Positions 19,112 to 64,000 of a DNA stretch of 64,000 nt are shown piece by piece; the first letter of the stretch is position 1; each line of letters opens with the position of its first letter. The translations under genes were made by a program, and so were the position numbers. The DNA is from Paramoeba atlantica (taxonomy: Eukaryota > Protista > Discosea). The stretch lies in NCBI GenBank assembly GCA_977017575.1, contig CDRNVI010000144.1, positions 374,510 to 438,509 on the forward strand. Reading direction: 5' to 3'. Under the pieces are notes generated by a model. That model was not told where the DNA came from and ran no database searches. It was given only the letters and a program-made list of their open reading frames with translations.

Positions 19112-19560
19112 TAAATTGAATAACTCCCTTAAGTATGATTAAAGTTATTCTATCCCTTTTTCCACACTCTTGAGGAAATTTCAAGGTTTAGTGATTACAA
19201 TTCAAGTGGTATACTTCTCCAAACCTCTCTCTTTTGATGGAACCTTGATAACACCTGTAGCCCTTTCTAAAAACCTCTATAATATATATTCTACTTCAAT
19301 CCTAAGTGACAAGTTATGTGAAAATATGTTGGATAATGAAAAGAACAGAAAAAAAAGAAAAAAAAAAAAAAAAAGATATGTAATCTTTAAAGAAGGTAAA
19401 CTTCCTCCAAGTGATGATGAAGATTAACTAACTATTCTAAGAATTAATTAATTTAAATATTATTAACCATGTCTATATTACCAATTGATAAAACCTAAAC
19501 TATCTTTTCTATCTATATGATGGTTTTTTACCTTAATAAATTAATAGCATTTTCTGATGT

Positions 19561-21720
19561 TTAGTGGAAAAAAAAAAAGAATAGAAGGCAGGAACTAGTT
19601 GCTATTCTTTTACAGATCTTGAGTTTTTCTTTATTTTGAAGCTTGTTTATATTCCAGGAGAGAACTTTCAAGTTAGGGAAACAAGAAAAACATTGAATTT
19701 GGAGTAAATTAAGAGGGTTAGATTTCAAAGAGAGGATTTGAAAATCACAAAGTCTCTCTTGGGGGAAAGGGAAGTTGAGGAAGGTGGGGGGAATAGGAAG
19801 TTGAGAAATTAGTTGGGACTTATTGACAACCATCAAAGGAGAGGGTTGAAGTTGAGCATCAAATCTCAGGGGGGGAGATTAAAGGAATCCATACTTTTTG
19901 ATATTTTGATTATTCTTTTTTTCTTTTTTTTTCTTTTTGTTCACCATCTTTCACTCTATCTTTTAGTATTTCTTTCTTTTTTTTTTAATTAACTTCCAAC
20001 TTAGAACTTTCTTTCAACTTTTTTCCTTTTTTTTCTGGTTTTTTCTTTTTTTTTTTTCCTTTTTTTCTTTAAACTTTTCCTCTTTTCCTTTTAAACAATA
20101 GAGAAGCTTTCCTAAGGGTCATTTGGGGATGATTTTAAGCTTCCATCAAGACTGGCATCCCAAGAACAAGAGGAAAAGGGAGAATCAGCAATTTTTTGGC
20201 TATTGCCAGAATGAGAACCAAATGAAAAAGTTGAAAATTTATGTTCATCTAAATTACTAAAAAAGGTAATGTTTTTCTGATTTTGTAAGCCAGTAACAAT
20301 GTTCTTTTTTTGGGTTATTTTTTTAGCTTGTGATTCAGGAACTCCATCAAGGACATCTTTGGAGAGAGGAACACTCTGGACACCAGTGAAGGAAGCAGGG
20401 GAAGGGACACCAGTGGAGGAAGAAGGGGAAGTGACATCAGTGGAAGGAGAAGGGGAGGGGACATCAGTGGAGGGAGAAGAGAAAAAAACACCTCTAGAAT
20501 TTCTCATCTTGTTATTTTTTTCCTTCCCTGCAAGAATGGTTTTGGAAATTATATTCAATTTTTTAGCTTCTAACATTTTGTTTGTATTGCCTTTCAATTT
20601 CTTTTTGCTTTGCCTCACTTTTTCTCTATCTTTATTGATTATTTCTCCTGTTTCTTCTGCTGATAATTGTCTTGGTCTTTTCTTGAATTTAGCTGTGTTT
20701 GAAGTAATAAATTGAACTGTTTCAATTAAAACTTATTGAAGCTTTTTGTTCAGTAATTCATATTTGCTATTTTCAAGGTTTGTAACTTTTTTTTTAGTTT
20801 TTTCATTCCCTGCTTCCACCTGAATTGGGTTGGAAGATCCCCCAGCCATGCTCAAGCTTTCTCACTCATACCAAAACTTATTTCCTCAATCTTTCCTCCT
20901 TTCAAAGGGATTTTCATTATAACTGACCCATCACTCTTCTCTTCTTCCTTGTTTTCTTCCTTACTATCAGTCTTTCTTCTTTTGATTATAATTATATCTC
21001 CATCACCATCCTCTTCCCTTCTTTCCTGTTCATTCACTTCCCTCTTTTTTTGTTCATTCTTACCTTGTGTTTTAGAGCCTTTGCTCATTTCTTTCTTCTC
21101 ACTCTCCATTTCAGCAATTTTATCTTTTTCCTTAAGGCACTGTTCTTTAGTTGATGTTTCTTTTTCATCAATAAATTTCATTTCTTCATACTTCTTTGCA
21201 TTTGTGATCATGATTTGGTCTTTCTCAAGACTAAAGCTTTGTTGCTCTTCTTCAAAAAGCTTGCTGATGGCATCCTCTCCTTGTTTCTGAATAATCTCTA
21301 CAGTGCAAGTAAGGCTTGCAAGATGGTTCACCCCACAGAGGGGGCACTCAATAAGGAGGTGGTATGGTTTGATTGGTGTTCAAATGGAACACTTGGCTTT
21401 AATCAAAATATTGATTTGGATGAATTCTTTGGTCTTGGCAATAAAGCAAACTAGAGAGAGGGGAATGGATTTGTAGAAGATGATGATGCAGTCCTCAGAG
21501 ACTTGTACCACTTCTTTGAGATTGAGAGAGGGAAGGTGGTTCTCTATTGAATAAATTGTAAATCCACTCATTCTCTGAAACTTGAAAAGAGAGTTTGATC
21601 TTGATCCCCCACAAATGGGCATCATGATTAACTCTCCAAATACAAGAACTCTTGAGTTGGTTGGTGATCAGGTTTTCTTTCTTTTTAATAATAGATTGAA
21701 TCATGAGGATATCCTCCTTC
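19561..21720 (-). pseudogene. L1-like LINE fragment: most of ORF1 plus the start of ORF2 (APE N-terminus)
   Basis: Paralogous to 30386-34330. Contains CPLCGVNHLASLTC, a coiled-coil-like region, S/P-rich repeats and LKVLSWNINKLQN. Confidence 0.8.
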
Positions 21721-21726
21721 TTCTAA

Positions 21727-22504
21727 AAAAAAAACCCTTAGAAATCATCTGAGGGTTCTTTTTTGCTGATATCTTCTCTTTTTCAAGTTTGCTGTGGTAG
21801 AAGACCACCCCACAGGGAGCTGAGCATATCTGCTGATAGTTCTCAACTTACTCTATCCAATTATATCTTCCAAAAGCTTTAATTTGTTTTTCAACAGAGT
21901 TGCTGGAGGAAATGCTAATTCAATACTACTATTTTTGAAAAAAGCAGTCTCAGATATGAACCAAATGATTGCTAAGCTTTGGGAGATGATTGATATTAAG
22001 AATGCCTCCTTTTCCACTCACCTTGCTACCAAACTCAACTTGTCTCTCATTAAAGGAGCCAGAGTATGCCCCCTCTCCCCAGTAGAAGCTTTTGCCTTCC
22101 CCAATGAGATTCCTACCTTCCCCAACTTCCTGAGAGCTATTGAAAGTCAAACCAACCTCAAGAGAAGTATTAGAGTGGAGGCAAGAACCAAACACTATGC
22201 CATCCTTACCCACAAGGAGGAAGATAGCTTCATGATCCAATCTATTATTGAAGAGAAAGGAAACTAAAAAAAAAAAAAAACCCTTAGAAGTTATCTGAGG
22301 GTTCTTTTTTGCTATTATCTTCCCTTTCTCAAGTTTGCTGTGGTAGAAAACCACCCCACAGGAAGTTGAGCATATCTGCTGATAGCTCTCAACTTACTCT
22401 ATCCAATTATGTCCTCCAAAAGCTCTAACTTGTCCTTCAGCAGAATTGCTGGAGGAAACACTAATTCAACACCATTATTCCTGAAAAAAACAGTTCCAGG
22501 TATG
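21727..22504 (+). repeat. Two tandem copies of the LINE ORF1 5' segment, each starting at A(n)CCCTTAG
   Basis: Starts at ~21727 and ~22266. Homologous to 23246-23757 (RVAGGNANS...KHYAIL). Confidence 0.8.
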
Positions 22505-23174
22505 TGTGAGGATAGATGTGAGGAGGGGAGCAGAATCAACAGAGAAAACAAGAGAAAAGAAAGAGAAACAGAAACTTTGAATTAAAACCTTTATAAGAAG
22601 GATCCCCAGCCAACACTAACAGAACAAGAAAACAACAACAAAGAAACAAAAAAGCAAAAAGAAGAACAACAAAAGGAATCACAACTGAGAAAAGCACAGA
22701 ATTGCTGAAACTCAACTTAAATCAGAATCCCAAGTCAACACAGCAACCAAAGAAGGAAGAAAGCAACAAAAGATGATAATAACAAAAGAAGAAAACAAAA
22801 AGCAAGCAAAGCAAGCCAAAAAATCACAAAGGAAAGCAGAAAGAAAGAGAGAGAGTAACAAGAAAGCAGAAAGAAGGCAGAAAGCAGCAAAGCAGCAAGA
22901 AAAAGGGGGCAAAATACAAACATGAAAATTGAATAAAAAGAGTACAAAAAATCTCATGATTTTAGCTAAAATTATAATAAAATGGCACATGGCTGTCTGT
23001 GAGGCTTAGAGCTCTCTGAAAGGACTAAAACTCATGATAAAAGGCATCAAGGAAGCTCAGGGAAGGCTCAAGGAGGCTCAAGGAAGCCTGGGGAAGCTCA
23101 GGGAAGATTCTAAAAACACTGAAAAGGCACTGAAAGGCACAACTTCTGTGTTGGAAGCAGGTCTCACTCCAACA
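22505..23174. mobile_element. Solo-LTR-like repeat (670 bp) inserted into LINE ORF1
   Basis: TGTGAGG...CCAACA termini with near-TSD TATG/TATA that restores LINE ccaggtatgaacc. Other copies at 39949-40573 and 60137-60806. Confidence 0.7.
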
Positions 23175-23757
23175 TATAAACCAAATGATTGCTAAGCTTT
23201 GGGAGATGATTGATATAAAGACTTTGAAAATCATACAGTAGACTTAAAAAAAAAACCCTTAGGAATCATTTGAGGGTTCTTTTTTGCTGTTATCTTCCCT
23301 TTCTCAAGTTTGCTGTGGTAGAAGACCACCCCACAGGGAGCTGAGCATATCTGCTGATAGCTCTCAACTTACTCTATCCAATTATGTTCTCCAAAAGCTC
23401 TAACCTGTCTTTCAACAGAGTTGCTGGAGGAAATGCTAATTCAACACCATTATTCCTGAAAAAAGCAGTCCCAGGTATGAACCAAACAATTGCCAAGCTT
23501 TGGGAAATGATTGATATTAAGAATGCCTCCCTGTCCACTTGCCTTGCTACCAAACTTAACCTGACTCTCATCAAAGGAGCCAGGGTATACCCCCTCTTCC
23601 CAGTAGGAGCTTTTGCCTTCCCCAATGAGATCTCTATCTTCTCCAACTTCCTGAGAGCTATTGAAAGCCAAACCAACCTCAAGGGAAGTATTAGAGTGGA
23701 GGCAAGGGTCAAACACTATGCTATCCTTGCCCACAAAGAGGAGGATGTCTTCATGAT

Positions 23758-26700
23758 TGTCAAGTGGCGGGGTTTGGTGGAAGAAGATTGCTGAGAAAAG
23801 AAAAGAAAGGTGCAAACTTCATTCCATGGCGAGAGCTGGGAACGTGAGAAAAAACAAAGTCTCTCACGCATTTATTTACAAACAGGTTTCAAGCACATAT
23901 TTAACAATGTGACACCAAGTGCAAAAACAGAGAAACACACACAAATAAAAGCACACGTAAGAGACACAAAGACACAACAAGTTTAAGGAAGGGAACAACA
24001 GATGACATCAGCACAAATAAATTCATGGGCTGAAAGATCAGAATATGGAGAATAAACTATGCAATCAAATTGGGTCTGAAATAGGGCAAAGGTATTCTTG
24101 AAGGCACAATTCAATGATTGATCAATATCTCAGTGTGTAGTTGTCAGATTCAGATGGAACTAGCGCCATTCGAAAGAGGAAGATGAGACGCTTCAGGATA
24201 GCACAACTCGTGATCATAGAATTCACAAATGATGTTCTCCATTAAGTCAAACATTCTTCAAACCAAGAATACTGATATTCTAACACTCCCTTTCATCATG
24301 AAGTTAATTCGCAGAGCAACAGGGACGAATAAGATTATTCCGGTGAGGTGTAAACACATTGGGTCCAAGGGGTTTTGTAAAAATATTGGCAAGGTTATCT
24401 TTAGTGGGCACATAATCCAACTCAATCAAGCCATCTTGCAATGCTTTTCTTGTGTAATGATCAAAGGCTTCAATTTGCTTAGTTCTTTGGTTTACACGGG
24501 GAATCTTTGCAATAGCCATCGCAGGTTCAGAATTGGATTGGAGCAAGAAAGGTCTTTTGTACGGGATGCACAACTCAGAGAGAATGTTATCAACAAATTT
24601 CAATTCACAGGATGCTTCAGCAAGGGCATGGTATTCAGATTCACAACTGGACCAACAAACTTGAGGAGATTTCTTGGAACGCCAGGATATGGGAGAACCA
24701 TTTGCAAAAATAGCAAAACCATAAGATGAGGATCTGTCTTCTGTAACATCTTGATGGCTTGAGTCAGCTTGGGCGGAAATCACAAGTTCTTTAGTCTCAG
24801 ATTTGGATTTGGGAAACACCAATTCATAATCAGGATATTTGGCAAGATAACCGAGAATTCGTAGAGCAGCTTTGTCATGATCTTTAGTGTAGGTGTTCAA
24901 GAAGCAAGAGCATTGGGAAACAGCATATGAAATATCAGGACGAGTTTTCGTCAACCAAATTAGAGAACCAACAAGACTAGCATAGGGAAAATCAGTCGGG
25001 GGTTCGTCAGGCTTAGGCATAGGCAGAACTTTACTCACAGCAGGAGTATCACTCTTTCTTATTTTGTGGCAGTCAAAACTCTCCAATAAATTGTTGAGGA
25101 AGGCACACTGATTGAGAGAAATTTCTTTGTGATTTTGTTTCACACCACAACCAAGGAACCAGGAGCATTTTCCACTAGGCTTCCACTTGAATCTTTCAAT
25201 CAGTTTGGAGTAAATCTCTTCACGGAGCTTTGGACAAGTACAAACATCCAAATTATCATCAACAACAGTTGGGAATAAACAGAAGTTTCCATCAGGTTCA
25301 ACACGAATGTAGAGATTGGGATCAGCAGTCAGACAATGGAATTGCAGCTCTTCAATAAGAAATTTTCGAAAAGTCAGATTCCAACATTGTCCAGCAATTG
25401 GCACACCATAGAGAGCTTTGTTCAATCGACAGAGATATTCGGGATGTTCAGGATCTTCGAAACCTTCGGGTTGAGTGACATAATAAACAATATCGCCATC
25501 AGGAATGTCAGCTTGGATATAGGCACTTGGGACATCTCCAGAATTCACATCGAGGTCAAACATAGCAGCAATAGCAAATGTCAAATTGAGAGATTCAGTG
25601 GTTGCAGTTCCAGCATAATTATCTTCTTGGTCAAAATTGGGATCTTTCACAAGACTATGTTTTACATGAGAACCGTTTGCACAAAATCGAGCTTTGAACT
25701 TGGATATTACACCATTTTCAGTCTTAATTCGAAATCGCCACAGGCCTTGCATAATAATGTGTTTCTTTCCATCCTTGGGGAACTTCAGGGGAGGAGGCAC
25801 CAATTCCCAAGTTTTATTTTCAATATGAGCATCATATTCTCTTTTGCAGGCTTGTTTCCATTCTTCTTTTTCATTTGAACGAGCGGCTTGCTTGTAGGAT
25901 CGGGGGGTAACTTTGTCATTAACAACTTGGTCAGCATGGAAGGCATAGTCAAGGAAATCAAGATCTTTGTAACCACGGCCAGGTTCACCAAACGTATTCC
26001 AAGGTATTTTCAGGGCACTGAACGCTTTTCCAATGGCACTATGTTGGTAGTCAGGGTCTTGGAAGCAAGCAGAGTGTCTTACTTCTTCAGCTGCATCATC
26101 AGATTCATTTGGTTCAGAGATGTTAATTTCATCATCAGGTTGAGATTGAGTAACAAGATTGAAATCAACTTCAGAATCAGTTTCAGAGTTGTATGTAGAG
26201 GAAGAGTAAGGAGATGCAGATTGGTCTGCAGGGTCATAAGGGTCAGGATCATGATCATCTGGTGGGTAATCGAACATTTCAAAATTATCAAGGTCAATCG
26301 GCAATTCAGGTTCATTTTCATCAGCAGAGTCATAATCAGTTCCTTCACTTTCTTCATCCTTCATATTTAATTCTGAAATTTGAGGGAGAATTTCAGAATC
26401 AGGGGCTGCAGCAGCTTGAGCAGGATCAACAATTGGAGAAGAAGAGGAACTAGAAGAGGAGCAAGAGGAGCAAGAGGAAGATGGAGGTGTGTAAGAACCA
26501 TTGCTCTGAGTAAAATCGGGAGGAGGCATACTGAGAAGCACCATCTCATCATCATCATCATCACTGTACACATCCGTACTGTGGGTTTTCTCATTCAAAG
26601 GAGTATGTTTTGAATGTAAGTTTACAGGAGCAGGAGTGGAATGGCCTATTTCGTTCTCCCTTTCAACATCAACAGGGTAATCATCATCAATTACAATTTT

Positions 26701-29700
26701 GGCAGAATTGTCAGGATTCTCATGTACACAATCCACGGGATTTGTGTTCGTACTCAGAATGTCGTCACAGTCTGATAATTTCGAAAAATCAATGAATTTT
26801 TCATTCAAATAAGTGTCAAAATAGTGTGGGATATTCCCTCTATCAATACGCTTCAACAGGTTCAAAACACCAAAAACATATTCATCAAATACCACACTTG
26901 AACTTTCAAAAATAGTTTTCTTTACAGGGTCATACAAAATATAACCATTAATTTTTTCTGAGGGGCCAAGATAGATCGCAGGGCGCGCTTTAGGCATCAG
27001 TTTGGTTCTGTTCTTTCGGGGAATGTGCGCAAAAGCATGACAACCAAAAGGGCGAATCAACTCAATATTGGGTTTGCGACCATACAGCTTCTGGAAGGGG
27101 GAAATCTCTTCACCTTCTTTCACAATGTAGGAGCTCACAACACTTGCAAGTTTTTCAGCATAATCCCAAAATTGTTCAGGCAATCCAGCATGGATTCAAA
27201 TCGCTTGAGCAGTGTTCCATCGAGTCTCATTTGCACGTTCAGCAACACCATTTTCAGCAGAATCATCTCTACTAGAAAATCTGATATGAATTCCTTTTTC
27301 AGTGCAATATTGTCCAATTTTCGTTGCAGGACTGACAAATTCCCAAGCACTGTCGCATTGAATGATTTTGACCTTCACATCTAATTGTCTTTGAAGCTTT
27401 GCAATCAGGTTGATCAGCACTTCGCCAGCATCACTCTTTTTCTTGAGGAATTCAGATAAATCCATCTTGGAGTAGTCTTCAACAACTGAGAGAGAGTATT
27501 TGTTCTTCTGATAAGAAAGTATATTTTTCTCGTGGTTGTCAATGTGCAACATTTCACCGAGTTTTTGTTTTGTTCTCGTACCAGGGGTATGACTCTTCCT
27601 TTTCACTTTGGCCAACTCACAAGCAGTACAAACATTTTGATCCATTCTCAATCTGTGATATTGCAGGGGCAAACCATCAACCACACGAGCATTAATAGTC
27701 CTTTTTAAACCAGAAAAATGACACAATCTATTATGCCAATATTTCCATTCTTTTTCACAGGTAGGACAGAGGGTTCTACAGATTCTTTTCTTGCGGAGAG
27801 GTTGAGATGAAGGAGCATCCTCAGGGGTTTCATTTTTTGGGTGAGTAACTTCTTCAGCAATATAAGATTGTTGATGGTTGGTTCGACTGGGTAAAGCCAA
27901 ATAATACAAGCCATTGTTCTGTGGACCACTCAAAATCGTCTGGGAATTGCTCAAATTGATCTTCTTTTTTGTCACACGAATTTGGTCAGAATCCAAAACA
28001 ACAGAAGCATCCCAAGTTTCACACATGTGAGCCACAGAGAGAAGATTCATTTCACAATTGGGGACTACAGAGATGTCTTGAAGAGGTGGCAAATCAGGAT
28101 GAATTGCCAAGTCACCTTGCATTGTAACAGGAATCAGATTGCCATTCGCTTGCTTGATGCTTATGGACATTGCGGGTGGAGTGTTTCTTGTTGTGAGATT
28201 TGGATCATTCACAATTGTGTTTGAACAAGCTGAATCAGCAAGAGCAGTTGCTCCATTTGATTGTTTTGCAACAAAAGCAGATTGAATCGAAGATTGAGAA
28301 GAAGAAACGAGAGCAGAAACGCAACAAGAGTAAACAGGAATATTGATTTTATTCATTTTTATCTTCCAAGCATTGATCTTTTGAACGAAAGCGTCGAAAT
28401 TCACCTTGGCTTGTTGTCCCACAGCACTTTGGTTTGCTGGGTTTGTGTTGCAACCTTTCACAATGTGACTGGTGGCACCACAACGAAAACAGGCTTTAGC
28501 TGGAGGGGTGGGTGGATCTTCCCATCCAGGGTAATTTCGAAACTGGTTGCACGTTTGAGGAGAAGGAATTAGAGGACTACGGCGAGGAGGGCCATTTCCT
28601 TGTCTTCCTTGGCGAGGAGGGGCAACATTTCCTAGTTGATTAGGATTGGCAGCAGGGTTATTCTTCTTCCGAAAAGCAACATAAGCAGCGGCGTTCTCCT
28701 TGGTCTTCAAGGCTTGTTTCTTCTTGTTGGCGCTGGAGTGACTACCTTTGATTTCTTTTAACTCCAAGAAAGCACTCTCCACTGTCCACTCTCCCACTCT
28801 AAGCAATCCTCGAAAGGTTTCCCAACGTTGTTGCAGCATGGAATCTCGAATGTAACCCAATTTCTTGTTCATTGGTATCGGTTTCCCTTTCAACGCTTCA
28901 ACGTGAAGAAATAACTCCTTCAGTCTCAACTCAAAACTAGAGATCATCTCATTTTCTCCGATACAACAATCCTCTAACTTACTTTTCACTTCTTTAACGT
29001 TGTGAACAATCACGGTACTCAGATTTAAGATCAATGTGTCCCAAATAATTTTTGGTGTTCTTCTCTTCAAATCGCTAAGATACTCCTTTGCTTGACCAAC
29101 ACAAGCCTTATTCAGTAAGTTTGTAAGATTCATTTGATTGTCCATATGGTCATCAAAATGTCTTTGGTTGATTTGCTGCTTGTACTCCAATTTCTCTTTG
29201 TGTCTTGCCTCCAACTCCTTTCTTTCTGCCAAGAATCTTTTCTTCTCAGCTTCTTCCATTTTTTCTGTAATCTTCTCCAGCTCCTCCTCAAACTTAATTA
29301 GAACAGGTTCACCTGTAGGAACTTTGTCAAGGAATAGATGATGAATGAGATTTTGGGTGCTGAGTCGAATGAGTGTCTCTTTTCGCCAGAGCATGAATTC
29401 AATGGTGGATTCACCTTTGAGTTCATTAATCTCGAGTGCACCCTTCCATGTCTTGTTCTTTGGTTCAAACTCTGGCCAATCTACTACTCTATAATCATCT
29501 TCCATAGTTGAGGATGTGGCGAACATAAAAGAGCGAGAGAGAAAAGCGAGAAACAGTGACAGGAGGAAACGAGCGAGAAAAACCAAGAAAACCACACAGA
29601 ATCGTGAAAACACACGATTAAAACAAACAGAAAGACAGGCAAAAGGAACAAGAGAGCAAGAACAATAAAAAGAAATCGAGTGAAGTTGTTGAACAAATGA

Positions 29701-31498: not shown

Positions 31499-31816
31499 AA
31501 TTGTGGCATAATGGCTTAGTTGGTAAAACAGCTATTGCTTCAATTCAAGGTTGCAGGTTTAAATTCCAAAGAGGAAAATATTAAAAACATTATTTTCTCT
31601 TCCTGCTCACTTGAATGTGAAAAATAGAACAGATTATCCTCTGCCCTGTTTGCTAAAAAGCAGAGAATAAATTCCCTGAGAAGGAGTTTGAGTGAATTAA
31701 AGGTCTTTGGACCATTTGAACCTAAAAAGGTGAAACTCTATCCTCATTATTTTTAACCTTAAAAAATTAGTAGCTTTGGGTTAAACCATCACCTAATAAA
31801 GTCCAGTGTTAAAAAG
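31499..31816 (+). mobile_element. SINE-A copy in LINE ORF1
   Basis: TSD aaaaagaaattgaa on both sides. The empty site is visible in the paralog at ~62705. Confidence 0.85.
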
Positions 31817-31918
31817 AAAAAGAAATTGAAAGGCAACACAGATAAAATGTTGAAAGTTAAAAAATCGAACACAATTTCTAAAACCATTCTTGTGAAAAAA
31901 GAAAAAAGTGACAGAATG

Positions 31919-32778: not shown

Positions 32779-32874
32779 AGTGGCAAAGTGAAAAACTTTA
32801 GAGGTGTTCCTCTCCCATCTTCCTCCACTGGTGTCCCTTCCTCCTCCTCCTCCACTGGTGTCCCTCCCCCTTCT

Positions 32875-39600: not shown

Positions 39601-39611
39601 AAGGAAGAAAT

Positions 39612-39917: not shown

Positions 39918-39948
39918 TATCATGATTGACTCTCTAGATGTGAGGAGG

Positions 39949-51812: not shown

Positions 51813-53453
51813 CAATTTCTTTTTGCTTTGCCTCACTTTTTCCCTATCTTTATTGATTATTTTCCCTGTTTCTTCAGCTAATAATTGTCTTGGTCTTTTC
51901 TTGAATTTAGCTGTGTTTGAAGCAATAAATTTAACCATTTCAATCAAAACTTGTTGAAGTTTTTCATTCAGTAATTTATATTTCCTGTTTTTGAGGTTTG
52001 TAACTGTTTTTTTGAGTTCTTTCATTTTCTGCTTCTACCTAAATTTGGTTGGAAGATCCCCCAGCCATGCCCAAGCTTCCTCACCCATACTGAAACTCAT
52101 TTCTTTGATCTTTCCTCCTTCCAAGGGGACTTTCACTGTGATTGATCCATCCCTCTTCCCCTCCTCCTTGTTTTCTTCCTCACTATCAACTTCTTTCCCT
52201 TTGATCATAATTATATCTTTGTCACCATCCTCTTCCCTTCTTTCCTGTTCATTCACTTCCCTCTTTTCTTGTTCATTCTTACCTTCCATTTCAGAGCTAT
52301 TGCTCATTCCTTCCTCCTTGCTCTCCATTCCAGCAATTTCAACTTTTTTCTTAGGGACCCATTCTTCAGTTGGCTTTTCTTTTTCATAAATAAATTTCAT
52401 TCTTTCATACTTCTTTGCATTTGTGATCATGATTTGGTCTTTCTTGAAACTAAAGCTTTGTTGCTCATCTTCAAAAAGCTTGCTAATAGCATCTTCACCT
52501 TGTTTCCAGATGATTTTTGTAGTGCAAGTAAGGCTCACAAGATGGTTTACTCCATATAAGGAGCACTCAACAAGGAGGTGGTATGGTTTGGTAAGCATTC
52601 AAATGGAACACTTGGCTTTAATCAAGGTGTTGATTTGGATGAATCCTTTGGTCTTGGCAATAAGGTGGACTAGAGAGAGGAGAATGGACTTATAGAAGAT
52701 GATGATGCAGTCATCAGAGACTTGTACCATTTCTTTAAAATTGAGAGAGGGAAGGTGGTCCTCTCCATTAAATAAATTGTAAATCCACTCATTCTCTGAG
52801 ACTTGGTAAGGGAGTTTGATCTTGATCCCCCACAAATGGGCATTATGATTGATTCTCCAAATACAAGAACTCTCAAGTTGGTTGATGATCAGGTTTCCTT
52901 TCTCTTCAATAATAGATTGAATCATTGTTAGAATATCAGTATTCTTGGTTTGAAGAATGTTTGACTTAATGGAGAACATCATTTGTGAATTCTATGATCA
53001 CGAGTTGTGCTATCCTGAAGCGCCTCATCTTCCTCTTTCAAATGGCGCTAGTCCCATCTGAATCTGACAACTACACACTGAGATATTGATCAATCATTGA
53101 ATTGTGCCTTCAAGAATACCTTTGCCCTATTTCAGACCCAATTTGATTGCATAGTTTATTCTCTATATTCTGATCTTTCAGCCCATGAATTTATTTGTGC
53201 TGACGTCATCTGTTGTTCCCTTCCTTAAACTTGTTGTGTCTTTGTGTCTCTTACGTGTGCTTTTATTTGTGTGTGTTTCTCTGTTTTTGCACTTGGTGTC
53301 ACATTGTTAAATATGTGCTTGAAACCTGTTCGTAAATAAACGTGTGAGAGACTTTGTTTTTTCTCACATTCCCGGCTCTCGCCATGGAATGAAGTTTGCA
53401 CCTTTCTTTTCTTTTCTCAGCAATCTTCTTTCACCAAACCCCGCCACTTGACA

Positions 53454-53466
53454 GATTAAGAGTCTA
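53454..53466 (+). promoter_or_regulatory. Primer-binding site complementary to the tRNA-Lys(CUU) anticodon arm
   Basis: GATTAAGAGTCTA directly follows the LTR CA. Its reverse complement TAGA-CTCTTAA-TC matches the conserved tRNA-Lys(CUU) loop. Confidence 0.75.
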
Positions 53467-53784
53467 GGCTCTCTGCTTGATCTTGTCATTAGTAGAACTT
53501 CAGTGTTTTACACCTTTCTTTGTTTTATTTTTTTGTTTTATTTTTGTTTTATTTTCTGTTTTTTTGTTTTTCGTTTTTGTTTTTGTTTTCGCTCATTCGC
53601 ACCCATTCTCTCATTTGTTCAACAACTTCACTCGATTTCTTTTTATTGTTCTTGCTCTCTTGTTCCTTTTGCCTGTCTTTCTGTTTGTTTTAATCGTGTG
53701 TTTTCACGATTCTGTGTGGTTTTCTTGGTTTTTCTCGCTCGTTTCCTCCTGTCGCTGTTTCTCGCTTTTCTCTCTCGCTCTTTT

Positions 53785-56700
53785 ATGTTCGCCACATCCT
53801 CAACTATGGAAGATGATTATAGAGTAGTAGATTGGCCAGAGTTTGAACCAAAGAACAAGACATGGAAGGGTGCACTCGAGATTAATGAACTCAAAGGTGA
53901 ATCCACCATTGAATTCATGCTCTGGCGAAAAGAGACACTCATTCGACTCAGCACCCAAAATCTCATTCATCATCTATTCCTTGACAAAGTTCCTACAGGT
54001 GAACCTGTTCTAATTAAGTTTGAGGAGGAGCTGGAGAAGATTACAGAAAAAATGGAAGAAGCTGAGAAGAAAAGATTCTTGGCAGAAAGAAAGGAGTTGG
54101 AGGCAAGACACAAAGAGAAATTGGAGTACAAGCAGCAAATCAACCAAAGACATTTTGATGACCATATGGACAATCAAATGAATCTTACAAACTTACTGAA
54201 TAAGGCTTGTGTTGGTCAAGCAAAGGAGTATCTTAGCGATTTGAAGAGAAGAACACCAAAAATTATTTGGGACACATTGATCTTAAATCTGAGTACCGTG
54301 ATTGTTCACAACGTTAAAGAAGTGAAAAGTAAGTTAGAGGATTGTTGTATCGGAGAAAATGAGATGATCTCTAGTTTTGAGTTGAGACTGAAGGAGTTAT
54401 TTCTTCACGTTGAAGCGTTGAAAGGGAAACCGATACCAATGAACAAGAAATTGGGTTACATTCGAGATTCCATGCTGCAACAACGTTGGGAAACCTTTCG
54501 AGGATTGCTTAGAGTGGGAGAGTGGACAGTGGAGAGTGCTTTCTTGGAGTTAAAAGAAATCAAAGGTAGTCACTCCAGCGCCAACAAGAAGAAACAAGCC
54601 TTGAAGACCAAGGAGAACGCCGCTGCTTATGTTGCTTTTCGGAAGAAGAATAACCCTGCTGCCAATCCTAATCAACTAGGAAATGTTGCCCCTCCTCGCC
54701 AAGGAAGACAAGGAAATGGCCCTCCTCGCCGTAGTCCTCTAATTCCTTCTCCTCAAACGTGCAACCAGTTTCGAAATTACCCTGGATGGGAAGATCCACC
54801 CACCCCTCCAGCTAAAGCCTGTTTTCGTTGTGGTGCCACCAGTCACATTGTGAAAGGTTGCAACACAAACCCAGCAAACCAAAGTGCTGTGGGACAACAA
54901 GCCAAGGTGAATTTCGACGCTTTCGTTCAAAAGATCAATGCTTGGAAGATAAAAATGAATAAAATCAATATTCCTGTTTACTCTTGTTGCGTTTCTGCTC
55001 TCGTTTCTTCTTCTCAATCTTCGATTCAATCTGCTTTTGTTGCAAAACAATCAAATGGAGCAACTGCTCTTGCTGATTCAGCTTGTTCAAACACAATTGT
55101 GAATGATCCAAATCTCACAACAAGAAACACTCCACCCGCAATGTCCATAAGCATCAAGCAAGCGAATGGCAATCTGATTCCTGTTACAATGCAAGGTGAC
55201 TTGGCAATTCATCCTGATTTGCCACCTCTTCAAGACATCTCTGTAGTCCCCAATTGTGAAATGAATCTTCTCTCTGTGGCTCACATGTGTGAAACTTGGG
55301 ATGCTTCTGTTGTTTTGGATTCTGACCAAATTCGTGTGACAAAAAAGAAGATCAATTTGAGCAATTCCCAGACGATTTTGAGTGGTCCACAGAACAATGG
55401 CTTGTATTATTTGGCTTTACCCAGTCGAACCAACCATCAACAATCTTATATTGCTGAAGAAGTTACTCACCCAAAAAATGAAACCCCTGAGGATGCTCCT
55501 TCATCTCAACCTCTCCGCAAGAAAAGAATCTGTAGAACCCTCTGTCCTACCTGTGAAAAAGAATGGAAATATTGGCATAATAGATTGTGTCATTTTTCTG
55601 GTTTAAAAAGGACTATTAATGCTCGTGTGGTTGATGGTTTGCCCCTGCAATATCACAGATTGAGAATGGATCAAAATGTTTGTACTGCTTGTGAGTTGGC
55701 CAAAGTGAAAAGGAAGAGTCATACCCCTGGTACGAGAACAAAACAAAAACTCGGTGAAATGTTGCACATTGACAACCACGAGAAAAATATACTTTCTTAT
55801 CAGAAGAACAAATACTCTCTCTCAGTTGTTGAAGACTACTCCAAGATGGATTTATCTGAATTCCTCAAGAAAAAGAGTGATGCTGGCGAAGTGCTGATCA
55901 ACCTGATTGCAAAGCTTCAAAGACAATTAGATGTGAAGGTCAAAATCATTCAATGCGACAGTGCTTGGGAATTTGTCAGTCCTGCAACGAAAATTGGACA
56001 ATATTGCACTGAAAAAGGAATTCATATCAGATTTTCTAGTAGAGATGATTCTGCTGAAAATGGTGTTGCTGAACGTGCAAATGAGACTCGATGGAACACT
56101 GCTCAAGCGATTTGAATCCATGCTGGATTGCCTGAACAATTTTGGGATTATGCTGAAAAACTTGCAAGTGTTGTAAGCTCCTACATTGTGAAAGAAGGTG
56201 AAGAGATTTCCCCCTTCCAGAAGCTGTATGGTCGCAAACCCAATATTGAGTTGATTCGCCCTTTTGGTTGTCATGCTTTTGCGCACATTCCCCGAAAGAA
56301 CAGAACCAAACTGATGCCTAAAGCGCGCCCTGCGATCTATCTTGGCCCCTCAGAAAAAATTAATGGTTATATTTTGTATGACCCTGTAAAGAAAACTATT
56401 TTTGAAAGTTCAAGTGTGGTATTTGATGAATATGTTTTTGGTGTTTTGAACCTGTTGAAGCGTATTGATAGAGGGAATATCCCACACTATTTTGACACTT
56501 ATTTGAATGAAAAATTCATTGATTTTTCGAAATTATCAGACTGTGACGACATTCTGAGTACGAACACAAATCCCGTGGATTGTGTACATGAGAATCCTGA
56601 CAATTCTGCCAAAATTGTAATTGATGATGATTACCCTGTTGATGTTGAAAGGGAGAACGAAATAGGCCATTCCACTCCTGCTCCTGTAAACTTACATTCA

Positions 56701-59007
56701 AAACATACTCCTTTGAATGAGAAAACCCACAGTACGGATGTGTACAGTGATGATGATGATGATGAGATGGTGCTTCTCAGTATGCCTCCTCCCGATTTTA
56801 CTCAGAGCAATGGTTCTTACACACCTCCATCTTCCTCTTGCTCCTCTTGCTCCTCTTCTAGTTCCTCTTCTTCTCCAATTGTTGATCCTGCTCAAGCTGC
56901 TGCAGCCCCTGATTCTGAAATTCTCCCTCAAATTTCAGAATTAAATATGAAGGATGAAGAAAGTGAAGGAACTGATTATGACTCTGCTGATGAAAATGAA
57001 CCTGAATTGCCGATTGACCTTGATAATTTTGAAATGTTCGATTACCCACCAGATGATCATGATCCTGACCCTTATGACCCTGCAGACCAATCTGCATCTC
57101 CTTACTCTTCCTCTACATACAACTCTGAAACTGATTCTGAAGTTGATTTCAATCTTGTTACTCAATCTCAACCTGATGATGAAATTAACATCTCTGAACC
57201 AAATGAATCTGATGATGCAGCTGAAGAAGTAAGACACTCTGCTTGCTTCCAAGACCCTGACTACCAACATAGTGCCATTGGAAAAGCGTTCAGTGCCCTG
57301 AAAATACCTTGGAATACGTTTGGTGAACCTGGCCGTGGTTACAAAGATCTTGATTTCCTTGACTATGCCTTCCATGCTGACCAAGTTGTTAATGACAAAG
57401 TTACCCCCCGATCCTACAAGCAAGCCGCTCGTTCAAATGAAAAAGAAGAATGGAAACAAGCCTGCAAAAGAGAATATGATGCTCATATTGAAAATAAAAC
57501 TTGGGAATTGGTGCCTCCTCCCCTGAAGTTCCCCAAGGATGGAAAGAAACACATTATTATGCAAGGCCTGTGGCGATTTCGAATTAAGACTGAAAATGGT
57601 GTAATATCCAAGTTCAAAGCTCGATTTTGTGCAAACGGTTCTCATGTAAAACATAGTCTTGTGAAAGATCCCAATTTTGACCAAGAAGATAATTATGCTG
57701 GAACTGCAACCACTGAATCTCTCAATTTGACATTTGCTATTGCTGCTATGTTTGACCTCGATGTGAATTCTGGAGATGTCCCAAGTGCCTATATCCAAGC
57801 TGACATTCCTGATGGCGATATTGTTTATTATGTCACTCAACCCGAAGGTTTCGAAGATCCTGAACATCCCGAATATCTCTGTCGATTGAACAAAGCTCTC
57901 TATGGTGTGCCAATTGCTGGACAATGTTGGAATCTGACTTTTCGAAAATTTCTTATTGAAGAGCTGCAATTCCATTGTCTGACTGCTGATCCCAATCTCT
58001 ACATTCGTGTTGAACCTGATGGAAACTTCTGTTTATTCCCAACTGTTGTTGATGATAATTTGGATGTTTGTACTTGTCCAAAGCTCCGTGAAGAGATTTA
58101 CTCCAAACTGATTGAAAGATTCAAGTGGAAGCCTAGTGGAAAATGCTCCTGGTTCCTTGGTTGTGGTGTGAAACAAAATCACAAAGAAATTTCTCTCAAT
58201 CAGTGTGCCTTCCTCAACAATTTATTGGAGAGTTTTGACTGCCACAAAATAAGAAAGAGTGATACTCCTGCTGTGAGTAAAGTTCTGCCTATGCCTAAGC
58301 CTGACGAACCCCCGACTGATTTTCCCTATGCTAGTCTTGTTGGTTCTCTAATTTGGTTGACGAAAACTCGTCCTGATATTTCATATGCTGTTTCCCAATG
58401 CTCTTGCTTCTTGAACACCTACACTAAAGATCATGACAAAGCTGCTCTACGAATTCTCGGTTATCTTGCCAAATATCCTGATTATGAATTGGTGTTTCCC
58501 AAATCCAAATCTGAGACTAAAGAACTTGTGATTTCCGCCCAAGCTGACTCAAGCCATCAAGATGTTACAGAAGACAGATCCTCATCTTATGGTTTTGCTA
58601 TTTTTGCAAATGGTTCTCCCATATCCTGGCGTTCCAAGAAATCTCCTCAAGTTTGTTGGTCCAGTTGTGAATCTGAATACCATGCCCTTGCTGAAGCATC
58701 CTGTGAATTGAAATTTGTTGATAACATTCTCTCTGAGTTGTGCATCCCGTACAAAAGACCTTTCTTGCTCCAATCCAATTCTGAACCTGCGATGGCTATT
58801 GCAAAGATTCCCCGTGTAAACCAAAGAACTAAGCAAATTGAAGCCTTTGATCATTACACAAGAAAAGCATTGCAAGATGGCTTGATTGAGTTGGATTATG
58901 TGCCCACTAAAGATAACCTTGCCAATATTTTTACAAAACCCCTTGGACCCAATGTGTTTACACCTCACCGGAATAATCTTATTCGTCCCTGTTGCTCTGC
59001 GAATTAA
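53785..59007 (+). CDS. gag-pol: Copia Gag-Pol polyprotein with one in-frame TGA (56113-56115)
   Basis: Same protein as the left copy. The two ORF-track entries are in one frame (AQAI*IHAGLPEQFWDYA). Confidence 0.93.
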
Positions 59008-60136
59008 CTTCATGATGAAAGGGAGTGTTAGAATATCAGTATTCTTGGTTTGAAGAATGTTTGACTTAATGGAGAACATCATTTGTGAATTCTATGATCA
59101 CGAGTTGTGCTATCCTGAAGCGTCTCATCTTCCTCTTTCGAATGGCGCTAGTTCCATCTGAATCTGACAACTACACACTGAGATATTGATCAATCATTGA
59201 ATTGTGCCTTCAAGAATACCTTTGCCCTATTTCAGACCCAATTTGATTGCATAGTTTATTCTCCATATTCTGATCTTTCAGCCCATGAATTTATTTGTGC
59301 TGATGTCATCTGTTGTTCCCTTCCTTAAACTTGTTGTGTCTTTGTGTCTCTTACGTGTGCTTTTATTTGTGTGTGTTTCTCTGTTTTTGCACTTGGTGTC
59401 ACATTGTTAAATATGTGCTTGAAACCTGTTTGTAAATAAATGCGTGAGAGACTTTGTTTTTTCTCACGTTCCCAGCTCTCGCCATGGAATGAAGTTTGCA
59501 CCTTTCTTTTCTTTTCTCAGCAATCTTCTTCCACCAAACCCCGCCACTTGACAATCATGAAGACATCCTCCTCTTTGTGGGCAAGGATAGCATAGTGTTT
59601 GACCCTTGCCTCCACTCTAATACTTCCCTTGAGGTTGGTTTGGCTTTCAATAGCTCTCAGGAAGTTGGAGAAGATAGAGATCTCATTGGGGAAGGCAAAA
59701 GCTCCTACTGGGAAGAGGGGGTATACCCTGGCTCCTTTGATGAGAGTCAGGTTAAGTTTGGTAGCAAGGCAAGTGGACAGGGAGGCATTCTTAATATCAA
59801 TCATTTCCCAAAGCTTGGCAATTGTTTGGTTCATACCTGGGACTGCTTTTTTCAGGAATAATGGTGTTGAATTAGCATTTCCTCCAGCAACTCTGTTGAA
59901 AGACAGGTTAGAGCTTTTGGAGAACATAATTGGATAGAGTAAGTTGAGAGCTATCAGCAGATATGCTCAGCTCCCTGTGGGGTGGTCTTCTACCACAGCA
60001 AACTTGAGAAAGGGAAGATAACAGCAAAAAAGAACCCTCAAATGATTCCTAAGGGTTTTTTTTTTAAGTCTACTGTATGATTTTCAAAGTCTTTATATCA
60101 ATCATCTCCCAAAGCTTAGCAATCATTTGGTTTATA

Positions 60137-60806
60137 TGTTGGAGTGAGACCTGCTTCCAACACAGAAGTTGTGCCTTTCAGTGCCTTTTCAGTGTTTTTA
60201 GAATCTTCCCTGAGCTTCCCCAGGCTTCCTTGAGCCTCCTTGAGCCTTCCCTGAGCTTCCTTGATGCCTTTTATCATGAGTTTTAGTCCTTTCAGAGAGC
60301 TCTAAGCCTCACAGACAGCCATGTGCCATTTTATTATAATTTTAGCTAAAATCATGAGATTTTTTGTACTCTTTTTATTCAATTTTCATGTTTGTATTTT
60401 GCCCCCTTTTTCTTGCTGCTTTGCTGCTTTCTGCCTTCTTTCTGCTTTCTTGTTACTCTCTCTCTTTCTTTCTGCTTTCCTTTGTGATTTTTTGGCTTGC
60501 TTTGCTTGCTTTTTGTTTTCTTCTTTTGTTATTATCATCTTTTGTTGCTTTCTTCCTTCTTTGGTTGCTGTGTTGACTTGGGATTCTGATTTAAGTTGAG
60601 TTTCAGCAATTCTGTGCTTTTCTCAGTTGTGATTCCTTTTGTTGTTCTTCTTTTTGCTTTTTTGTTTCTTTGTTGTTGTTTTCTTGTTCTGTTAGTGTTG
60701 GCTGGGGATCCTTCTTATAAAGGTTTTAATTCAAAGTTTCTGTTTCTCTTTCTTTTCTCTTGTTTTCTCTGTTGATTCTGCTCCCCTCCTCACATCTATC
60801 CTCACA
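60137..60806. mobile_element. Solo-LTR-like repeat (mirror of 22505-23174)
   Basis: TG..CA termini, near-TSD TATA/CATA. Confidence 0.7.
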
Positions 60807-61590
60807 CATACCTGGAACTGTTTTTTTCAGGAATAATGGTGTTGAATTAGTGTTTCCTCCAGCAATTCTGCTGAAGGACAAGTTAGAGCTTTTGGAGGAC
60901 ATAATTGGATAGAGTAAGTTGAGAGCTATCAGCAGATATGCTCAACTTCCTGTGGGGTGGTTTTCTACCACAGCAAACTTGAGAAAGGGAAGATAATAGC
61001 AAAAAAGAACCCTCAGATAACTTCTAAGGGTTTTTTTTTTTTTTTAGTTTCCTTTCTCTTCAATAATAGATTGGATCATGAAGCTATCTTCCTCCTTGTG
61101 GGTAAGGATGGCATAGTGTTTGGTTCTTGCCTCCACTCTAATACTTCTCTTGAGGTTGGTTTGACTTTCAATAGCTCTCAGGAAGTTGGGGAAGGTAGGA
61201 ATCTCATTGGGGAAGGCAAAAGCTTCTACTGGGGAGAGGGGGCATACTCTGGCTCCTTTAATGAGAGACAAGTTGAGTTTGGTAGCAAGGTGAGTGGAAA
61301 AGGAGGCATTCTTAATATCAATCATCTCCCAAAGCTTAGCAATCATTTGGTTCATATCTGAGACTGCTTTTTTCAAAAATAGTAGTATTGAATTAGCATT
61401 TCCTCCAGCAACTCTGTTGAAAAACAAATTAAAGCTTTTGGAAGATATAATTGGATAGAGTAAGTTGAGAACTATCAGCAGATATGCTCAGCTCCCTGTG
61501 GGGTGGTCTTCTACCACAGCAAACTTGAAAAAGAGAAGATATCAGCAAAAAAGAACCCTCAGATGATTTCTAAGGGTTTTTTTTTTAGAA

Positions 61591-63750
61591 GAAGGAGGAT
61601 ATCCTCATGATTCAATCTATTATTAAAAAGAAAGAAAACCTGATCACCAACCAACTCAAGAGTTCTTGTATTTGGAGAGTTAATCATGATGCCCATTTGT
61701 GGGGGATCAAGATCAAACTCTCTTTTCAAGTTTCAGAGAATGAGTGGATTTACAATTTATTCAATAGAGAACCACCTTCCCTCTCTCAATCTCAAAGAAG
61801 TGGTACAAGTCTCTGAGGACTGCATCATCATCTTCTACAAATCCATTCCCCTCTCTCTAGTTTGCTTTATTGCCAAGACCAAAGAATTCATCCAAATCAA
61901 TATTTTGATTAAAGCCAAGTGTTCCATTTGAACACCAATCAAACCATACCACCTCCTTATTGAGTGCCCCCTCTGTGGGGTGAACCATCTTGCAAGCCTT
62001 ACTTGCACTGTAGAGATTATTCAGAAACAAGGAGAGGATGCCATCAGCAAGCTTTTTGAAGAAGAGCAACAAAGCTTTAGTCTTGAGAAAGACCAAATCA
62101 TGATCACAAATGCAAAGAAGTATGAAGAAATGAAATTTATTGATGAAAAAGAAACATCAACTAAAGAACAGTGCCTTAAGGAAAAAGATAAAATTGCTGA
62201 AATGGAGAGTGAGAAGAAAGAAATGAGCAAAGGCTCTAAAACACAAGGTAAGAATGAACAAAAAAAGAGGGAAGTGAATGAACAGGAAAGAAGGGAAGAG
62301 GATGGTGATGGAGATATAATTATAATCAAAAGAAGAAAGACTGATAGTAAGGAAGAAAACAAGGAAGAAGAGAAGAGTGATGGGTCAGTTATAATGAAAA
62401 TCCCTTTGAAAGGAGGAAAGATTGAGGAAATAAGTTTTGGTATGAGTGAGAAAGCTTGAGCATGGCTGGGGGATCTTCCAACCCAATTCAGGTGGAAGCA
62501 GGGAATGAAAAAACTAAAAAAAAAGTTACAAACCTTGAAAATAGCAAATATGAATTACTGAACAAAAAGCTTCAATAAGTTTTAATTGAAACAGTTCAAT
62601 TTATTACTTCAAACACAGCTAAATTCAAGAAAAGACCAAGACAATTATCAGCAGAAGAAACAGGAGAAATAATCAATAAAGATAGAGAAAAAGTGAGGCA
62701 AAGCAAAAAGAAATTGAAAGGCAATACAAACAAAATGTTAGAAGCTAAAAAATTGAATATAATTTCCAAAACCATTCTTGCAGGGAAGGAAAAAAATAAC
62801 AAGATGAGAAATTCTAGAGGTGTTTTTTTCTCTTCTCCCTCCACTGATGTCCCCTCCCCTTCTCCTTCCACTGATGTCACTTCCCCTTCTTCCTCCACTG
62901 GTGTCCCTTCCCCTGCTTCCTTCACTGGTGTCCAGAGTGTTCCTCTCTCCAAAGATGTCCTTGATGGAGTTCCTGAATCACAAGCTAAAAAAATAACCCA
63001 AAAAAAGAACATTGTTACTGGCTTACAAAATCAGAAAAACATTACCTTTTTTAGTAATTTAGATGAACATAAATTTTCAACTTTTTCATTTGGTTCTCAT
63101 TCTGGCAATAGCCAAAAAATTGCTGATTCTCCCTTTTCCTCTTGTTCTTGGGATGCCAGTCTTGATGGAAGCTTAAAATCATCCCCAAATGACCCTTAGG
63201 AAAGCTTCTCTATTGTTTAAAAGGAAAAGAGGAAAAGTTTAAAGAAAAAAAGGAAAAAAAAAAAAGAAAAAACCAGAAAAAAAAGGAAAAAAGTTGAAAG
63301 AAAGTTCTAAGTTGGAAGTTAATTAAAAAAAAAAGAAAGAAATACTAAAAGATAGAGTGAAAGATGGTGAACAAAAAGAAAAAAAAAGAAAAAAAGAATA
63401 ATCAAAATATCAAAAAGTATGGATTCCTTTAATCTCCCCCCCTGAGATTTGATGCTCAACTTCAACCCTCTCCTTTGATGGTTGTCAATAAGTCCCAACT
63501 AATTTCTCAACTTCCTATTCCCCCCACCTTCCTCAACTTCCCTTTCCCCCAAGAGAGACTTTGTGATTTTCAAATCCTCTCTTTGAAATCTAACCCTCTT
63601 AATTTACTCCAAATTCAATGTTTTTCTTGTTTCCCTAACTTGAAAGTTCTCTCCTGGAATATAAACAAGCTTCAAAATAAAGAAAAACTCAAGATCTGTA
63701 AAAGAATAGCAACTAGTTCCTGCCTTCTATTCTTTTTTTTTTTCCACTAA
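61591..63750 (+). pseudogene. LINE ORF1 plus ORF2 start (mirror of 19561-21720)
   Basis: Reverse complement of the left-arm copy. Confidence 0.8.
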
Positions 63751-64000
63751 ACATCAGAAAATGCTATTAATTTATTAAGGTAAAAAACCATCATATAGAT
63801 AGAAAAGATAGTTTAGGTTTTATCAATTGGTAATATAGACATGGTTAATAATATTTAAATTAATTAATTCTTAGAATAGTTAGTTAATCTTCATCATCAC
63901 TTGGAGGAAGTTTACCTTCTTTAAAGATTACATATCTTTTTTTTTTTTTTTTTCTTTTTTTTCTGTTCTTTTCATTATCCAACATATTTTCACATAACTT

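Follow-up and report, generated by a model that had tools for sequence, protein, structure and literature searches.

The end of contig C144 of Paramoeba atlantica carries two long inverted copies of the same transposon-rich sequence, and the locus raises the question whether these are the product of a single recent duplication, the arms of an older palindrome that are kept alike, or an error of the assembly. The window, i.e., the whole stretch of DNA analysed, comprises 64,000 nucleotides (C144:374510-438509; the contig has 438,509 bp), and positions without a contig name refer to it. All C-numbered contigs belong to one assembly, and arms are named by contig number and side (left, L, or right, R; e.g., 144L and 184R). 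The sister contig C184 was compared over its full sequence, and C182, C167, C177, C149, C207, and C178 were compared via marker coordinates and a few 5-kb pieces. Genome-wide maps rest on 2-kb markers; queries of 10-17 kb scored only one to six candidates and missed known copies.

Extent, strata, and content of the palindrome

As stated in a preliminary description of this DNA, positions 19311-33399 (left arm, plus strand) and 64000-49912 (right arm, minus strand) are reverse complements in one constant register with a coordinate sum of 83311. The 14,089 paired bases contain no indel and exactly the two mismatches named there, the transitions at 27136/56175 and 29557/53754. With BLAST the match extends to 19311-34554 versus 64000-48718 (99.34% identity, 15,283 columns). 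The arm identity of 99.99% is a figure of the assembly and may be inflated by polishing with multi-mapped reads or by partial collapse of the arms. The match was also said to run off the window, which it does, except that the end of the window is the end of C144, where the assembly cuts the right arm. Position 19311 therefore reflects the end of the contig rather than a biological boundary, and the figure of 14.1 kb does not describe the true length of the arms.

Outward of this match, the left arm continues at 2032-19310 (plus strand) with 98-99% collinearity to both arms of C184 (C184 34747-55682 and its mirror). A satellite remnant of 3.4 units of 196 bp at 15423-16075 has counterpart arrays in both C184 arms. 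The mirror of 2032-19310 is missing from C144 because the contig ends, and the marker search with positions 8001-10000 revealed no second 100% copy in the assembly. By homology with C184, the arms of C144 probably measure 60 kb or more. The palindrome is therefore seen through one complete inner junction pair, with about 390 kb more of the contig attached to the left arm and nothing assembled beyond the right one.

Towards the core, the divergence between the arms rises in a staircase. The youngest stratum (19311-33399 and 49912-64000) differs by 0.014%, the middle stratum (33400-33899, plus strand) by 1.2% from its mirror at 49412-49911, with the register preserved, and the oldest stratum (33900-35940, plus strand) by 4-11% from its mirror at about 46908-49411, with indels. 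Arm homology continues inward to about 35940/46908. The ~16.5-kb spacer of the preliminary description is thus correct as the zone without perfect identity, but only about 11 kb of it (35941-46907) is unpaired. This core consists of the rest of a LINE that begins in the left arm, a SINE-B at 38803-39225, and sequence without a Pfam match. The orthologue of the oldest left stratum is the right arm of C184, and that of the right inner arm (46909-49911, minus strand), which carries the facing LINE copy and SINEs, is the left inner arm of C184. The youngest stratum of the right arm is collinear with C184 69594-60126 through the junction 49911/49912.

The arms share a copia-type LTR retrotransposon, LTR-like repeats, SINEs, and a stop within a reading frame, as previously noted, and all of these lie inside the identical stretch. 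The copia element (23758-30385, minus strand, mirror at 52926-59553; Pfam RVT_2, rve, and gag_pre-integrs) is 6.6 kb long, ends in TG..CA, and is flanked by a 5-bp target duplication; its LTRs measure 528 bp each, and the one stop splits its reading frame. Both arm-specific transitions fall within it and are synonymous. Its LTRs differ at 11 of 528 sites (2.1%), all by transitions. The left LINE copy (30386-37126, plus strand), delimited by tblastn, for which the intact LINE in the core of C184 served as query, contains an ORF1-like region at 30389-30949 and residues 1-966 of ORF2 at 34294-37126. It forms the inner left arm, extends into the core, and is interrupted by a SINE cluster (31499-33747) of three SINE-A of ~325 bp, one SINE-B, and one partial copy. 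In case of the right LINE copy only residues 1-570 of ORF2 are present, with a SINE inserted at 47304-47628; a further SINE of the right inner arm is located at 49564-49892.

No Rfam match at the gathering threshold was obtained within the window, and a Pfam search of 20 ORFs of arms and core outside the copia and LINE elements returned fragments of reverse transcriptase, RNase H, and endonuclease only, with no match in the core-specific part 40991-46900. Paired protein-coding arm genes were observed neither in the arms of the window nor in C184 1-61 kb, where copia, LINE, reverse transcriptase and RNase H fragments, and ORFs without Pfam match make up the content. The nearest host gene seen, encoding polyubiquitin (C184:177553-178230), lies beyond the mirrored part. 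As far as these arms could be read, the palindromes of C144 and C184 are therefore not of the ampliconic type with arm genes under selection, and in this gene-free setting selection on paired genes cannot explain the likeness of the arms.

Sister palindromes and transfer between arms

C184 is 98-99% similar to C144 and bears the same palindrome, with arms of 61-65 kb (1-61240 and 169026-104153) that show about 22 differences in about 48 kb (about 99.95% identity) around a spacer of about 36-43 kb. With arms above about 8-10 kb and above 99% identity, both contigs rank among large palindromes. The satellite arrays of the C184 arms are unequal in length, with 4.6 versus 6.5 kb for a 381-bp array and 4.3 versus 6.0 kb for a 577-bp array, the latter being a higher-order unit of the satellite with the 196-bp unit. 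Due to these unequal copy numbers, the two arms must have been assembled independently. The cores of C144 and C184 at first sight appear inverted relative to each other, an interpretation that was rejected, as the contigs are merely written in opposite orientation.

C182 contains an inverted pair without differences in 3.5 kb, and in C167 the outer-arm marker is present as an inverted pair. For a shared 3.5 kb in three palindromes, the arms differ from each other at 0, 5, and 0 positions and the contigs at 60-100. Overall, contigs are 1.7-2.9% apart and the arms within each contig 0-0.05%. A marker from the core (41001-43000) was found in six other contigs only (C184, C182, C177, C207, C178, and C167; 91-99% identity, nine of nine candidates scored). 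Core marker and arm marker are each present in seven contigs, counted per contig, and the C144 palindrome is one of about six or more such structures. The sister contigs may be alleles in a polyploid or different loci. In no contig is the sequence outside the arms assembled on both sides, and because the contigs break inside these palindromes, the assembly underestimates the length of the arms, the number of copies, and possibly also chromosome joins.

Informative sites of the four C144 and C184 arms were sorted according to whether they group the arms by contig, by side, or in the third pattern. In the outer arm (19311-23757) all 77 sites group the arms by contig and none by side. In the inner arm (33750-36100) 183 of 189 sites group them by side (144L with 184R versus 144R with 184L), six by contig, and none in the third pattern. 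Taken together, these patterns indicate that the palindrome predates the split of the C144 and C184 versions and that homogenisation of the outer arms has proceeded separately in the two versions since then, such that the arms of one lineage match each other better than they match their orthologues in the other. In C184 the homogenised zone reaches to ~59500, equivalent to ~23127 of the window, and in C144 it extends about 3.7 kb further in (copia excluded); C184 shows a graded zone of 1.6-12% divergence. An origin of the inner-arm similarity from independent LINE insertions was rejected, since collinearity between left-type and right-type arms is kept to either side of the SINE insertion site and outward into the arm. 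Almost all substitutions at this locus are transitions, so that divergence may deviate from a clock and gives relative ages only roughly.

Several segments have moved from arm to arm. For the 1.1 kb at 30386-31500, 92 changes are private to 184R, with 144L identical to 144R and both close to 184L; at 33400-33899, 144L is still of the right-arm type, and 16 changes are private to 184R. The SINE cluster occurs on both C144 arms and on one C184 arm but is missing from the other, and at the position of the SINE at 33420-33747, 184R is cleanly empty and contains the ~14-bp target duplication only once. The copia target site is empty in both C184 arms. Considering these empty sites, the 2.1% LTR divergence, and the fact that the nearest other copia copies in the genome are 97% identical, the two identical copies derive from one insertion copied across the arms, not from two insertions. 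The absence of copia from both C184 arms and of the SINE cluster from one of them shows that one C144 arm was overwritten from the other.

History of the arms and competing explanations

The reading that we favour, with a probability of roughly 0.7, is a real and old large palindrome in gene-poor transposon and satellite DNA, the arms of which have been rewritten repeatedly by arm-to-arm gene conversion. Of this palindrome, the window covers the core and the innermost 15 kb of either arm. The original inverted duplication would have had its inner breakpoint within a LINE, so that two LINE copies face each other across the ~11-kb core. The arms would then have been repaired from each other repeatedly, by gene conversion between inverted repeats on one chromosome, and conversion tracts stopping at different points near the core would have produced the staircase. 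In C144, right-arm sequence has replaced the left arm inward to about 33900. At least two rounds were involved, the older tract ending near 33900 and the younger at 33399, and they left a SINE cluster and a copia element of 6.6 kb on both arms. Double-strand-break repair is a plausible mechanism, and the process may still be under way. A homogenised palindrome in a retroelement-dense domain had already been among the proposals of the preliminary description, and the distances between contigs (1.7-2.9%) and between arms of one contig (0-0.05%), together with the sorting of informative sites by contig in the outer and by side in the inner arm, bear it out, with ongoing activity as a likely extension. 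The domain may, as also suggested there, be centromeric or subtelomeric.

A much less probable explanation is that each version was made or renewed by one very recent inverted re-duplication of the whole arm, through fold-back or break-induced replication primed at the facing LINEs. Hairpin-type palindrome formation starts at short inverted repeats in yeast and mammalian cell models, and the identity boundary of C144 indeed lies in or beside two facing LINE/SINE copies. The long identical stretch of C144 without internal divergent patches fits such an event as well. However, the three divergence steps of C144 and the graded zone of C184 imply a minimum of two or three events in each lineage, and C144, C184, and C182 would each require a recent event of their own. 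One very recent duplication, as offered by the preliminary description, leaves both the three steps and the different homogenisation boundaries of C144 and C184 unexplained. Repeated whole-arm re-copying by break-induced replication would be indistinguishable in its pattern from a large number of shorter conversions, and in practice this explanation merges with repeated gene conversion, the difference being one of few large versus many small events.

An assembly artefact, in which the right 14 kb arose by fold-back or by chimeric extension or both arms were collapsed or polished to one consensus, is improbable. The right arm does end exactly where the contig ends, and the outer left arm is assembled only once, which points to a collapse that is at least partial. 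Yet a fold-back read yields arms that meet without a spacer, and in C144 neither a minimal spacer nor a copy devoid of independent sequence is found: an 11-kb core is flanked on each side by 2.5 kb of old inner arm that is 4-11% diverged, collinearity of the right arm with the left arm of C184, its orthologue, runs on through 49911/49912, and the 183 by-side sites reveal two real and distinct inner arms. Furthermore, C184 assembles both arms over more than 60 kb with unequal satellite lengths and scattered single-base differences. The fold-back that had been kept as an alternative is very unlikely on account of this core, the distinct inner arms with their C184 orthologues, and the satellite inequality. 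Two independent recent insertions or segmental copies by a mobile element, e.g., a giant composite transposon with inverted ends, can practically be dismissed even though the region is a nest of transposons, given that arms which measure 60 kb or more and contain satellite arrays far exceed known transposon ends, that the core marker is confined to its own contig and six others, unlike a dispersed repeat, and that the Pfam search of ORFs found no transposase-type gene in the core.

Comparison with known palindromes and centromeres

Mammalian sex chromosomes and fungal centromeres are the best-known sites of large palindromes homogenised by gene conversion. The same homogenisation behaviour is met here in a protist and in a gene-free setting, and several diverged sister copies make its history directly readable, with old inner strata, young outer strata, and insertions moved between arms.

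The palindromes of primate and mouse sex chromosomes (human Y P1-P8, X) have arms of tens of kb with >99.9% identity and a unique spacer, their arms resemble each other within a lineage more than they resemble the orthologous arms of another lineage, an observation attributed to continuing gene conversion between the arms, and structural change concentrates at the spacer and the inner arm (PMC8327919, PMC8600007). The Paramoeba palindrome resembles them in its near-identical arms, unique spacer, and within-lineage similarity of the arms. In contrast to their arms with selected protein-coding gene families, the visible arms of C144 and C184 consist of transposons and satellites only; moreover, the C144 palindrome belongs to a multi-copy protist family and has a clear divergence staircase at its inner edge.

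Palindromes formed after breaks at short inverted repeats are known from gene-amplification models in yeast and mammals and from the rDNA palindromes of Tetrahymena and Dictyostelium. The two facing LINE copies at the symmetry centre, the loop-like core, and the near-perfect identity outward are similar. The products of such breaks are usually palindromes of whole chromosome ends or extrachromosomal, whereas the left arm of C144 continues into about 390 kb of contig and the palindrome is an old one shared by diverged copies.

Inverted-repeat centromeres of fission yeast measure 40-100 kb, and those of Candida tropicalis contain homogenised inverted repeats (PMC7292649). Like these, the Paramoeba palindromes combine a core with long inverted repeats homogenised per locus, symmetric blocks of repeats and satellites, and several related copies, a correspondence of layout only. 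They differ in that their cores are 91-99% alike between loci and that their arms are composed of retroelements and 381/577-bp satellite arrays instead of dg/dh-type repeats. In a literature search, neither palindromes of this kind nor centromeres were found described for amoebae of the Paramoeba type. Considering their size of 130-170 kb or longer, the related transposon-filled cores, the facing LINEs, the mirrored satellite arrays, and the arms homogenised per locus, it is tempting to speculate, albeit with considerable doubt, that these palindromes are regional centromeres of the fission-yeast-like inverted-repeat type. If this holds and the host is an amoebozoan, they would represent the first inverted-repeat centromere type described for that supergroup, and would add a centromere architecture from a supergroup that a recent broad survey covering 325 genomes does not include (bioRxiv 10.64898/2026.09.17.752431).

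Arm extent and inner edge in C144

Positions 19311-33399 of the window pair with 64000-49912 over 14,089 bases with two mismatches and no indels (register sum 83311), and thus base-by-base pairing bears out the preliminary description of reverse-complement arms in one constant register. Both mismatches (27136/56175 and 29557/53754) are synonymous transitions at third codon positions within the copia LTR retrotransposon (23758-30385). Self-BLAST of the window lengthened the match to 19311-34554 versus 64000-48718 (99.34%). The match does leave the window, as had been described, but the contig ends there too, since C144 (CDRNVI010000144.1, the contig holding the window) has 438,509 bases and the window extends up to 438509. 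Therefore, position 19311 merely mirrors the point where the contig stops, and the assembly sets 14.1 kb as the minimum arm length. The contig may plausibly break where reads tied to the diverged inner arm gave out, so that the assembler could go no further into the right arm, and assembly polishing may have sharpened the arm identity.

Toward the core, arm-versus-arm divergence climbs stepwise, from 0.014% (19311-33399) to 1.2% with the register kept (33400-33899) and to 4-11% with indels (33900-35940). Arm homology stops at about 35940/46908, so that the spacer, previously given as 16.5 kb, exists as an unpaired core, but one of only about 11 kb (35941-46907). The inner arms consist of two copies of one LINE facing each other. 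As mapped by tblastn with an intact LINE from the core of contig C184, the left copy (34294-37126, plus strand) covers ORF2 residues 1-966 and the right copy (48978-46909, minus strand) residues 1-570. The right copy is shortened on its 3' side, which fits an original duplication breakpoint within that LINE. The apparently intact 6.6-kb LINE of C184 (69594-76174), missing from the C144 core, has an ORF1 of 590 aa and an ORF2 of 1231 aa, the latter encoding endonuclease, RT, zinc-finger, and RNase H domains; the family may still be active.

Related palindromes in the assembly

A 2-kb arm marker occurs as an inverted pair in both C184 and C182 (97-98% identical) and once in C141. C184 (178,795 bases, compared in full) is a giant palindrome in its own right, with arm matches of 1-16828 versus 169026-152199 (99.976%), 12273-52447 versus 154849-114675 (99.955%), and 48146-61240 versus 117245-104153 (99.05%). 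Since the contig start cuts the left arm, the arms measure at least 61-65 kb. They differ at approximately 22 scattered single bases across approximately 48 kb, and the arrays of a 381-bp and a 577-bp satellite span 4.6 versus 6.5 kb and 4.3 versus 6.0 kb, respectively. Due to these unequal lengths and scattered differences, the two C184 arms must have been assembled from different reads. The arrays form mirror pairs of unequal copy number (C184:12273-16828/150294-156754 and 48146-52447/112944-118976), and both satellites are higher-order units of a monomer of approximately 190 bp. In C184, some 7 kb separate the inner array from position ~59500, further inward, where arm identity begins to fall, and C182 terminates within the 577-bp array.

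C184 34747-60131 and its mirror align collinearly with window 2032-23758 (98-99%), and both C184 arms do so with the 10 kb preceding the window. Just outside the collinear stretch that begins at 2032, positions 1-1550 hold a 1.5-kb purine-rich strand made up of G+A micro- and minisatellites (GC skew +0.58, AT skew +0.63). An outer-arm marker revealed further copies, each at 98-99%, in C141, C177, C167 (inverted pair), C149, and C182. The core marker was found in C184, C182, C177, C207, C178, and C167 at 91-99% with all candidates scored; assembly searches with long queries scored part of the candidates. Such palindromes occupy roughly six or more places in the 45.7-Mb assembly. The sister contigs may be alleles in a polyploid genome or distinct loci; the at least six different versions exceed the allele number possible in a diploid.

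C141 (85,351 bases) partially duplicates C184:82740-178538, which comprises the right arm and the right-hand part of the core, at 99.7-99.8%, and matches neither C184 arm exactly. The outer flank C184:175001-177000 has 100% identity to both C170 and C141. Redundant or allelic contigs seem to be present around these palindromes. Three smaller matches to the outer-flank query keep a constant offset between C170 and C144, which hints that C170 plus C184 could be the homologue of C144.

Separate homogenisation of the arms

Within a 3.5-kb outer-arm segment, the two arms differ at 0, 5, and 0 sites in C144, C184, and C182, respectively, and at 60-100 sites between contigs. In a four-way count of site patterns using the left and right arms of C144 (144L, 144R) and C184 (184L, 184R), 77 sites of the outer arm (19311-23757) group by contig and none by side across contigs. 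For the inner arm (33750-36100), 6 sites group by contig and 183 by side (144L with 184R, 144R with 184L); the third pattern is absent from both regions. Two distinct inner arms thus predate the separation of C144 and C184, and the outer arms were homogenised separately in each afterwards. Judging from these patterns, the palindrome is older than its sister copies. An apparent core inversion between C144 and C184 is explained by arbitrary contig orientation.

A tRNA-like SINE of approximately 325 bp (33420-33747, compared with C184:103784-104153) is carried by 144L, 144R, and 184L. 184R lacks the entire SINE cluster (31499-33747), and its empty site for this SINE is clean, the ~14-bp target duplication being present once. 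The sister arms thus provide a clean pair of filled and empty sites for this SINE family. Over the 1.1 kb of 30386-31500, 184R has 92 private changes, and 144L and 144R are identical, both 2% from 184L. Accordingly, from about 33900 outward, the C144 left arm consists of right-arm-type sequence. The copia element ends in TG..CA and is flanked by a 5-bp target duplication, and both C184 arms show an unoccupied target site. Since the two LTRs have 11 differences in 528 sites (all transitions) and no other genomic copy exceeds 97%, one fairly old insertion was copied across; two independent insertions are rejected on the same grounds. The insertion point is the exact junction of a symmetric nest of transposons (20593-31500 and its mirror), in which two inverted 1.1-kb LINE-ORF1-like segments, 86.7% alike, flank a small element whose 513-bp direct repeats (21724-22236 and 23245-23757) are 90% alike.

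Substitutions between homologous copies (window 5821-49911 versus C184, several segments) are almost exclusively transitions (83:1, 72:4, 129:7, 136:4, and 36:0 over transversions), and the long arms are still near-identical. Such an excess suggests that this repeat-rich DNA mutates by a deamination-type or RIP-like process. Owing to this bias toward transitions, ages derived from divergence are rough.

Possibly, both arms were collapsed into the outer left arm of C144, as a marker search for window 8001-10000 yielded no further copy at 100%. A single recent duplication does not account for the end points of homogenisation: in C184 the homogenised zone ends near 59500 (window ~23127), followed inward by graded divergence of 1.6-12%, and this differing end point, together with the 1.2% step in C144, indicates several events. 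A fold-back artefact is very unlikely, since it would leave no spacer between the arms and no sequence peculiar to the copy, whereas C144 has an 11-kb core, each inner arm has its own C184 orthologue, and the right arm is collinear with its orthologue without a break through 49911/49912. Most likely, this is an old palindrome whose arms have undergone repeated arm-to-arm gene conversion, with tract ends scattered near the core.

Gene content and known parallels

In ORF and Pfam searches of the visible arms (window arms, C184 arm), no host gene was recognised, and arms and core gave no indication of a coding payload. The first clear host gene outward, which lies approximately 73 kb beyond the inner boundary of the arm, encodes polyubiquitin (C184:177553-178230, minus strand; 225 aa, three ubiquitin repeats). 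Palindromes of the primate X and Y chromosomes, whose arms are kept by conversion that continued after species divergence and whose structural changes cluster in the spacer and the inner part of the arms (PMC8327919, PMC8600007), behave as proposed here, but the arms visible here are without recognisable host genes. That the palindromes are centromeres is rather unlikely, and we name them as tentative candidates. Their layout of related cores and facing repeats resembles the centromeres of fission yeast and Candida tropicalis, and the likeness extends to mirror-image satellite arrays and locus-specific homogenisation (PMC7292649).
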